A DNA stretch of 38,752 nt from Octopus bimaculoides (Eukaryota). Shown here piece by piece: positions 28,184 to 36,720 of this stretch. The notes below the pieces were generated by a model that worked only from the letters and a program-made list of their open reading frames with translations, was not told where the DNA came from and searched no databases. Both the position numbers and the translations under genes were made by a program. The DNA is taken from NCBI RefSeq assembly GCF_001194135.2, contig NC_068981.1:193829142-193867893 (forward strand), read 5' to 3'. Position 1 is the first letter of the stretch. The number at the start of each line of letters is the position of its first letter.

Positions 28184-29438
28184 TCACCATCATCATTATC
28201 ATCATCATCATTATCACCCTCATCATTACCAATATCATCATCATCATTATGATCGTCGCCGTCGTCATTATGATCGTCGCCGTCATCATTATGATCGTCA
28301 CCATCATCATCACCATCGTCATCACTACCGCCACCACCCCTACCAACCTCATCATTACCATCAATACCACCAACACCACTAACAGCAGTATCCTTGCCAT
28401 GAGCATCATAGTTAATATTTTCACCATCATCACTATTGTCATAGTCACCATTGTTGTTGTTGTTTTAGTAAATGACTTTTGTTGTTCTTTTATTGTTGCA
28501 GTAACAAAAAGTCTCCTGTTCTAAATGACCCTGTCGTTAATGTTGCTGGTCTGCCCCTTCAACTTGCTATCAATACAGCCCAGTTTGGTCGGGTCTTCCA
28601 GGACAGAAGTCACATCTTCTACCTGATGCCACGGCCTTCGGGTGTGACACAAAACATCCACAACCTGAACGTCCGAGGTAAACGAGGCAACATTGTACAA
28701 ACCTTCTCAGCTGTGGAGTACGACTTTGTACCCAACTCACTAACTATAAATTCCGATGAGCTGGTACACATCCAGTGGACAGGTTAGTTAGCACCTCGTG
28801 TATTATCTGTGTTTTTTTTTTCATTACATCAAATAATGTTTATGTTGTTGTTCTTGTTGTTTAGTCCCACATTTCCCTTGATTACATGGACATCATCATC
28901 ATCATCGTTTAACGTCCGCTTTCCATGCTAGCATGGGTTGGACGATTTGACTGAGGACTGGTGAACCGGATGGCTGCACCAGGCTCCAATCTGATCTGGC
29001 AGAGTTTCTACAGCTAGATGTCCTTCTTAACGCCAACCGCTCCGAGAGTATAGTGGGTGCTTTTACGTGCCACCAGCACGAGGGCCAGTCAGGCGGTAAT
29101 GGCAACGGCCACACTCAAAATGGTGTTTTTTATGTACCACCTGCACATCCATGTTTCCAGAGGTGAATTATTCAAACCCCAAAGAATTCTTCTCAACACA
29201 TGGCTATGATGCTCCCCAACTACATCTGCGCATGATCAGAGATGCACATATTGTGAGCCACTTAGAAAAATGTTCAACTGGTTAAGGTCAAACAACTGAC
29301 TAGCAAATCTGTGGTATTGAGCAGACTATTTGTTGTAGCCCATCTTTTTATACCAAGACAAAATAATGTACATGATAACACTTCCAATCAGTTAAAATCA
29401 AAAGCCATGAGAGCCACTGCCTGGTACTGCATCAGGGC

Positions 29439-36720: not shown

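Follow-up and report, generated by a model that had tools for sequence, protein, structure and literature searches.

The C-terminal region of octopus DD3-3 is probably a degenerate, copper-free cupredoxin domain

The 38,752-nucleotide stretch of Octopus bimaculoides DNA analysed here (RefSeq assembly GCF_001194135.2, contig NC_068981.1, positions 193,829,142 to 193,867,893; hereafter the window, whose numbering is used throughout) carries the gene for DD3-3 at 14150-36720 on the + strand. Members of the DD3-3 family are glycoproteins of the cell surface or the secretory pathway. Knockout of DD3-3 in Dictyostelium leads to quicker aggregation and disturbed cyclic AMP (cAMP) signalling. The ascidian counterpart, HrSMLP1, is a membrane glycoprotein of haemocytes and tracks self and non-self, and microbial patterns induce a sponge homolog. 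The sole structural remark in the accessible DD3-3 literature is an Ihog FNIII-like motif reported in the ascidian homolog (PMC6916515); no paper in that literature links DD3-3 to cupredoxins, plastocyanin or copper, and none assigns a cupredoxin domain. One environmental homolog (P0232) bears the automatic Joint Genome Institute (JGI) name 'plastocyanin', and some annotation pipelines thus already sense a cupredoxin likeness. An earlier reading of the window (the original prediction) proposed that the C-terminus of this protein is a cupredoxin-like beta-sandwich with a large insertion, which keeps the first His, the Cys and an axial Gln of a blue-copper site, lacks the second His, and is either an atypical metal site or a metal-free derivative.

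The gene model comprises 12 recognisable coding exons (Table 1), assembled by translation and splicing, with all junctions GT-AG and in frame. With exon 2 omitted, the model agrees at every residue with UniProt A0A0L8HLP4 ('Protein DD3-3', Octopus bimaculoides), and the gene in the window is therefore the gene of that entry. The encoded protein consists of a signal peptide, a Cys-rich N-terminal part of ~400-420 residues and a C-terminal cupredoxin-like domain, with about seven disulfides. Database searches with the window protein return the DD3-3 proteins of O. bimaculoides and O. sinensis at E = 0 with 100% coverage; upwards of 100 full-length DD3-3-like homologs follow at E < 1e-140, from molluscs, annelids, brachiopods, echinoderms, hemichordates, tunicates, cnidarians, sponges, placozoans and rotifers. 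The taxonomic range of the family covers animals from sponges to tunicates, vertebrates excepted, together with Dictyostelium and many environmental sequences of uncertain origin. The C-terminal domain is encoded by the last four exons, which match the complete O. sinensis orthologue gap-free; the splice from 28503-28782 to 30001-30054 uses a donor GT at 28783 and an acceptor AG just before 30001. Retranslation confirmed the predicted exon coordinates and the His, Cys and Gln codons, which read CAC, TGC and CAG.

Predicted structures place this C-terminal region among the cupredoxins. Two AlphaFold2 models were computed, one of the complete O. sinensis orthologue using a 114-sequence alignment and one of the window's own C-terminal 236 residues, modelled alone. 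The full-length model is a confident single body (predicted local distance difference test, pLDDT, 86.9; predicted template modelling score 0.89), and its only coherent Foldseek matches in the PDB are plastocyanin, pseudoazurin, AcoP, nitrosocyanin and CuA domains (E 0.06-1; template modelling (TM) score per target 0.4-0.6). For the isolated domain (pLDDT 74.7), cupredoxins occupy 50 of the 50 best PDB matches, among them fern, plant, algal and cyanobacterial plastocyanins, auracyanin, rusticyanin, amicyanin, pseudoazurin and AcoP as well as domains of nitrite reductase and laccase, and no fibronectin type III (FnIII) or immunoglobulin (Ig) domain appears among the 50. Fern plastocyanin 1kdi is the best match (E 8e-4, probability 1.00), and plastocyanin targets reach TM scores per target of 0.52-0.63. 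The predicted structures accordingly display the Greek-key sandwich of the cupredoxin fold (SCOP b.6.1; CATH 2.60.40.420). From Foldseek alignments that extend over ~186 query columns against targets of ~98 residues, we estimate that the insertion separating the His loop from the last three strands amounts to ~85-90 residues. Both the cupredoxin-like sandwich and the large insertion of the original prediction are therefore borne out.

A bacterial protein links this fold to bona fide blue-copper sequences. Bacterial genomes were scanned for the two most conserved DD3-3 peptides, and a single relative was returned, namely a 142-residue secreted protein from an Actinomycetota metagenome-assembled genome (L001; contig DAIMHT010000139.1, 2845-3273, + strand), the sequence of which runs ...FYSPSKVTVAAGTVVTFQWTGSNTHNVTV...GTYKIVCTLHPGMNLTLNVK. 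It passes the Pfam cutoffs for both Copper-bind (4e-8) and Cupredoxin_1, and FQWTGSNTHN lies at its first-His ligand, the nine residues QWTGSNTHN being identical to those of animal DD3-3. All four type-1 ligands (H76, C111, H114 and M117) are invariant in 42 aligned bacterial cupredoxins. The small secreted actinobacterial family to which the protein belongs has 93 database relatives.

Profile alignment with hhalign of the DD3-3 C-terminal domain against these 42 sequences gives a probability of 93-94% and E ~1e-7 over the segment from strand 2 through strand 3 to the His, with EYDFxPxxLxIxxxDLVHIQW opposite the cupredoxin F-x-P-x-x-V-T-V-x-x-G-x-x-V-T-W. Upon excision of the middle insertion the values rise to 96.9% and E 1.3e-10, and the alignment continues to the C-terminus, pairing His480 with H76, Cys600 with C111, (S/T)601 with T112 and Asn603 with H114. 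Gln611 pairs with M117 only past a five-residue gap, in a low-confidence stretch of this alignment; the contexts around the axial position, Q-K-G-x-(I/L)-x-V in DD3-3 and M-x-x-T-L-x-V in the bacterial cupredoxins, are compatible. Since the bacterial family had been found through the shared motif, the eight motif columns were deleted from both alignments, and the same register was kept at E 9e-5. The GxYxYxC(T/S) segment of the unexcised domain aligns on its own at E 2e-4. As a negative control, the N-terminal 400 residues of DD3-3 align to the bacterial cupredoxin profile with a probability of 0.06%. The possibility that these 400 residues arose by internal duplication or contain another cupredoxin domain was rejected, the probabilities against the cupredoxin profile and the C-terminal domain being 0.06-0.11%. 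Homology to bona fide cupredoxins is thus found at the level of profiles, and because the profile alignment and the independent Foldseek searches agree, we regard both the fold and the equivalence of the ligand positions as established, with the Gln-Met equivalence the least certain. The predicted placement of the first His and the Cys at ligand positions stands on this alignment, and that of the Gln at the axial position stands less reliably.

Conservation of these positions was assessed in 114 full-length homologs and in 80 environmental homologs (37-56% identity), 194 in all; counts out of 81 refer to the environmental set plus the window sequence. The first type-1 ligand, a His followed by Asn after strand 3, has its counterpart in His480-Asn481, opposite the invariant H76-N77 of the bacterial proteins. 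His480 is present in 109 of 114 full-length homologs and 72 of 81 environmental sequences (180/194 pooled, 93%), and the Asn that follows it is also retained in the family. At the end of strand 7 the window protein has Cys600 in the ligand-Cys position, but this residue is no family constant, being found in 95 of 114 (Ser in 12, Asn in 4 and Gly in 3 of the others) and 60 of 81 (154/194 pooled, 79%). Gln611 is kept in 107/114 and 79/81 (96%), and His471 in 113/114 full-length homologs. Across the family, then, the His and Gln singled out by the original prediction are well conserved, whereas its Cys reaches only 79%.

No homolog among the 194 has a His at Cys+2 to Cys+4, where the second His ligand would lie; Cys+3 is Asn in every one, the window included, which agrees with the predicted lack of this ligand. 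Stray His residues occur elsewhere in the loop in 3 of 114 full-length homologs, each at a different position. In place of the ligand loop stands the near-invariant R-N-N-N-F-x-N-R-x-Q-K, which is five residues longer. R602, N603 and R609 are found in 114/114 full-length homologs, N604, N608 and K612 in 113/114 and F606 in 111/114, while R602, N603, F606, N608 and R609 are present in 81/81 of the environmental set. A PROSITE-like pattern for type-1 copper sites matched 0 of 114 DD3-3 proteins but also 0 of the 42 real bacterial cupredoxins and, having no power to discriminate, was set aside.

Cys600 is the fifteenth conserved Cys of the family, and its absence never goes along with the loss of one of the other fourteen. 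Being odd in number and never co-lost with another Cys, it is best regarded as a free thiol, and a disulfide involving Cys600, one of the findings that the original prediction had named as counting against it, is ruled out by this co-occurrence analysis; an unconserved His, another such finding, is likewise at odds with the 93% retention of His480. Both members of the neighbouring CX5C pair are gone together in the three sequences that lack them, and this pair plausibly forms a local disulfide. Losses of His480 and Cys600 coincide, with 8 double losses among the pooled 194 sequences (odds ratio 6.2, Fisher p 0.002, phylogeny ignored). Echinoderms, a rotifer, a sponge, some bivalves and many environmental homologs lack the Cys or the His and keep everything else. 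The Gly/Asp-rich loop that follows THNN is, in cephalopods, six residues shorter than the consensus NNGxPGGDGQxGDAGEGxxGTDR; homologs without His480 also carry a shortened loop (GSNTNPxNN...). This loop resembles a cation-binding Gly/Asp motif and is modelled with low confidence.

These observations lead us to propose, with a probability of roughly 60%, that the last ~190 residues of octopus DD3-3 are a degenerate, probably copper-free cupredoxin domain whose metal end has been recast as a polar, basic surface. What the models and alignments show is the fold, with eight strands in a Greek-key beta-sandwich that is homologous to the blue-copper proteins of the plastocyanin type and is enlarged, between the first-His loop and strand 6, by two helices, a CX5C disulfide loop and the Gly/Asp-rich loop. 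They also place His480, Cys600 and, less reliably, Gln611 at the ancestral ligand positions, with the second His replaced by the invariant Asn603. Such a domain would no longer carry electrons as blue-copper proteins do, and it most likely binds no copper. The loops that once held copper would instead serve as a positively charged inter-domain or ligand-binding surface that partners the conserved N-terminal part, with His480 and Cys600 kept as hydrogen-bonding relics, and DD3-3 itself would be a secreted or membrane-anchored glycoprotein.

Judged from the homologous sequences, a canonical type-1 site exists nowhere in the DD3-3 family, and the Cys and the His are not needed for its function, whereas the Arg/Asn-rich loop is. 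Of the two outcomes left open by the original prediction, the metal-free derivative is favoured by the family data, because the Cys is lost in 21% of homologs, the His in 7%, and a complete site is found in no lineage; the atypical site fares less well. The three northern loops, which include GSNTHNN and RNNNFxNRxQKG, are the most conserved parts of the domain. Their model confidence drops when the N-terminal part is omitted, the His480 and RNNNF...Q loops having pLDDT ~70-79 in the full-length model versus 44-59 in the isolated domain, which suggests that these loops contact the N-terminal domain.

Several results pull the other way. Foldseek E-values are modest, 8e-4 at best, with root-mean-square deviations of 6-8 A that we ascribe to the insertions, and the loops just described are modelled with limited confidence, above all in the isolated domain. 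Pfam is silent on the whole protein, the exon peptides, the 236-residue domain, 30 domain sequences and 9 insertion-excised cores; one of the 30 members reaches Copper-bind at only E 0.14, so that DD3-3 stays below the gathering thresholds of PF00127 (Copper-bind) and PF13473 (Cupredoxin_1). Sequence searches of the PDB by phmmer with the single protein and by hmmsearch with the domain profile returned no cupredoxin, just noise (RipA, FhaC, M protein). The hhalign E-values are inflated by the ascertainment of the bacterial family through the DD3-3 motif, for which the motif-deletion test is a partial control. Finally, retention of a free Cys in 79%, of the His in 93% and of the Gln in 96% of homologs, with correlated loss, exceeds what a neutral relic would be expected to show and fits a real but dispensable site. 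A residual interaction between His480 and Cys600 may therefore persist, either as a hydrogen bond or as a dispensable metal site.

The best-surviving alternative, which we consider possible but unlikely, takes up this last point: His480, Cys600 and Gln611 would form an atypical functional mononuclear site for Cu, Zn or another metal in the lineages that retain them, octopus included. Its fourth position would be filled by water, the Asn603 side chain, a backbone carbonyl, or His471 or His454 (P0122 numbering), and DD3-3 would then be redox-active or metal-sensing, like perturbed or 'red' copper sites such as that of nitrosocyanin. The occupation of three ancestral ligand positions speaks for such a site, as do the high retention of an unpaired Cys, the joint loss of His and Cys expected of cooperating residues, the conserved H-N pair, which in cupredoxins supports the Cys loop, and the presence of nitrosocyanin and AcoP among the structural matches. 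Further nearly invariant His residues of the family, namely H26, H106, H241, H367, H454 and H506 (P0122 numbering), count in the same direction. However, the place of the second His is taken by an invariant Asn, the loop is flanked by two invariant Arg and a Lys that disfavour cation binding, and we know of no natural type-1 site with a single His. Because whole clades lack the Cys or the His yet keep the rest, the core function of the family cannot depend on this site.

A bolder form of this idea, in which DD3-3 would be an unrecognised extracellular metallo or redox family of invertebrates and protists, with either a His-Cys-Gln copper site of an undescribed kind or an inter-domain metal centre built from His471, His480 and N-terminal His, strikes us as decidedly improbable. 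More remote again is a generic beta-sandwich of the FnIII or Ig-like type with coincidental copper-like residues. It would accommodate the failure of the Pfam and PDB sequence searches to find a cupredoxin, the Ihog FNIII-like motif of the ascidian homolog and the weak full-length Foldseek E-values, but it is opposed by the exclusively cupredoxin matches of the domain model, by a profile alignment that stays in register at both ligand-bearing segments even without the selected motif, and by the occurrence of QWTGSNTHN at the very place of the first-His ligand in a cupredoxin that Pfam confirms. Lastly, a gene-model artefact, in which wrong exons or coding sequence lost in gaps conceal a different C-terminus, is scarcely credible: the window does contain eleven runs of N, three of them in the region, and one upstream exon is truly missing, but all junctions are GT-AG and in frame, the C-terminal exons are gap-free against the O. 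sinensis protein and more than 100 full-length homologs, and the public UniProt model ends in the same C-terminus.

Among known systems, the degenerate domain proposed here shares its Greek-key sandwich with the plastocyanin/pseudoazurin/amicyanin-type cupredoxins (PF00127), and its closest known relatives are the actinobacterial subfamily with W-T-G-S-N-T-H-N and C-T-(F/L)-H-P-G-M. With the latter it shares F-x-P-x-x-(L/V)-x-(I/V)...V-x-x-Q-W-T-G-S-N-T-H-N, with the first His followed by Asn, the G-x-Y-x-Y-x-C-(T/S) strand leading to the Cys, and the final strand past the axial position. Unlike plastocyanin-type proteins, DD3-3 has Asn for the second His, an Arg/Asn loop longer by five residues, Gln rather than Met at the presumed axial position, a large insertion, and a fusion behind a ~420-residue Cys-rich domain in a eukaryotic secreted protein; its Cys and His are dispensable, and the Pfam models miss the domain.

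Stellacyanin keeps both His ligands and the Cys and has an axial Gln, while early-nodulin-like proteins are phytocyanin relatives without copper ligands and with non-redox roles at the cell surface. A Gln at the presumed axial position is likewise seen in DD3-3, with the reservation that the Gln-Met pairing is less reliable, but DD3-3 lacks the second His and differs from the stellacyanin/phytocyanin group in loop, domain context and taxonomic range, and we do not assign it there; no phytocyanin figures in the top 50 structural hits of the domain model, nor is a sequence relation to phytocyanins detectable, though no sequence test aimed at them was made. Cupredoxin folds without copper have precedents: the ectodomain of ephrin and, in molluscan haemocyanin, the cupredoxin-like domain at the C-terminus of functional unit h both put the blue-copper fold to copper-free use as an extracellular module for binding or structure. 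These two are not known to keep any ligand positions, whereas DD3-3 seems to keep three of four, and neither appears among the Foldseek matches of the full-length or the domain model.

The N-terminal part (P0122 residues ~20-425, corresponding to window exons 14150-26060) is modelled with high confidence and contains invariant polar motifs including FDSQNNxRGGYNVGD; it has no credible Foldseek match in the PDB and no Pfam family. This part also holds six nearly invariant His residues. A Foldseek search of the full-length model against viral structures returned nothing. Octopus DD3-3 is probably secreted, since the protein ends directly after the last strand. Two environmental homologs from metatranscriptome contigs (L075 and L076) run on beyond the last cupredoxin strand into a hydrophobic stretch of transmembrane-like character and a short tail, an extension that fits the single-pass membrane form reported in Dictyostelium.

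The window is AT-rich, repeat-laden eukaryotic DNA. Because the C-terminal exons align gap-free to the O. sinensis orthologue, the three N gaps between them fall within introns, and no coding exon is lost in them. The upstream exon for orthologue residues 365-394 (RTNHLGNG...KRCVFRI), of 30-35 residues, has no tblastn match in the window outside the N gaps and must therefore sit in one of the two gaps listed for it in Table 1. This exon, which falls within 22066-26003 and is conserved in all homologs, is absent from A0A0L8HLP4 too, and its loss is silent in gene models because the flanking exons are phase-compatible. Exon 2, bounded by GT-AG sites, is conserved throughout the homologs; since it is left out of the public UniProt model, that model is 26 residues short at this point. 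Two broken Tc1/mariner-type transposase remnants (Pfam DDE_3, plus a helix-turn-helix) are each interrupted by an N gap, the second lying inside a DD3-3 intron. A SINE-like (short interspersed element) repeat of ~260 bp with the core ...TTTAACGTCCGCTTTCCATGCTAGCATGGGTTGGACG... is present in introns in at least seven copies, in both orientations and 72-92% alike.

Table 1. Coordinates of DD3-3 exons, key codons, assembly gaps and repeats in the window (all exon junctions GT-AG, in frame).
Feature	Position	Strand	Remarks
Exon 1	14150-14305	+	
Exon 2	15849-15926	+	78 nt
Exon 3	16047-16215	+	
Exon 4	17015-17197	+	
Exon 5	18289-18475	+	
Exon 6	19790-19953	+	
Exon 7	21915-22065	+	
Exon 8	26004-26060	+	
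Exon 9	28502-28782	+	starts C-terminal domain: conserved hairpins, strands 1, 2 and 3 (LVHIQW), from DSSP of the AlphaFold2 models and hhalign
His471	28767-28769	+	in LVHIQW
Exon 10	30001-30054	+	54-nt micro-exon: GSNTHNN and Gly/Asp-rich loop
His480	30012-30014	+	CAC; followed by Asn481
Gly/Asp-rich loop	30018-30054	+	after THNN
Exon 11	34499-34670	+	bulk of the enlarged middle region (strands IVQ and RIVWIY, helix PKDLALNLA), the insertion relative to plastocyanin
Exon 12	36516-36720	+	terminal exon: CX5C disulfide loop, helix, strands 6-8
Cys600	36661-36663	+	TGC
Loop R602-K612	36667-36699	+	
Asn603	36670-36672	+	
Gln611	36694-36696	+	CAG
Stop codon	36718-36720	+	
N gap	22469-22722		candidate location of exon for residues 365-394
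N gap	24211-24890		candidate location of exon for residues 365-394
N gap	30300-31263		intron between exons 10 and 11; orthologue continuous, GEGNAG/TDRHN over junction
N gap	33227-33669		same intron; orthologue continuous
N gap	35580-35643		last intron; orthologue continuous, SSGYYT/CVNSAKC over junction
Tc1/mariner-type remnant	2608-3201	+	DDE_3 1.7e-12
Tc1/mariner-type remnant	22167-23258	-	DDE_3 6.7e-9
SINE-like repeat	15421-15804	-	
SINE-like repeat	17838-18011		
SINE-like repeat	18760-19012		
SINE-like repeat	25047-25254		
SINE-like repeat	28880-29170		
SINE-like repeat	34863-35099	-	
SINE-like repeat	36054-36243		

Links of DD3-3 to cell aggregation, to haemocyte allorecognition and to the response to microbes are on record, yet the protein has been without an assigned domain or biochemical activity. 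Placement of its C-terminus among the cupredoxins provides an evolutionary anchor for the family, by way of the nine-residue motif that it has in common with a bacterial family of blue-copper proteins. The functional handle on an orphan family that the original prediction hoped for is weaker than anticipated, the conserved feature being the RNNNFxNRxQK loop and not the copper-like residues. That loop and its partner loops would be better targets for mutagenesis than the copper-like His and Cys. If the proposed degeneration is correct, DD3-3 would also offer a natural example of the decay of a type-1 copper site, in which the second His was lost first and the Cys and the first His later, together.

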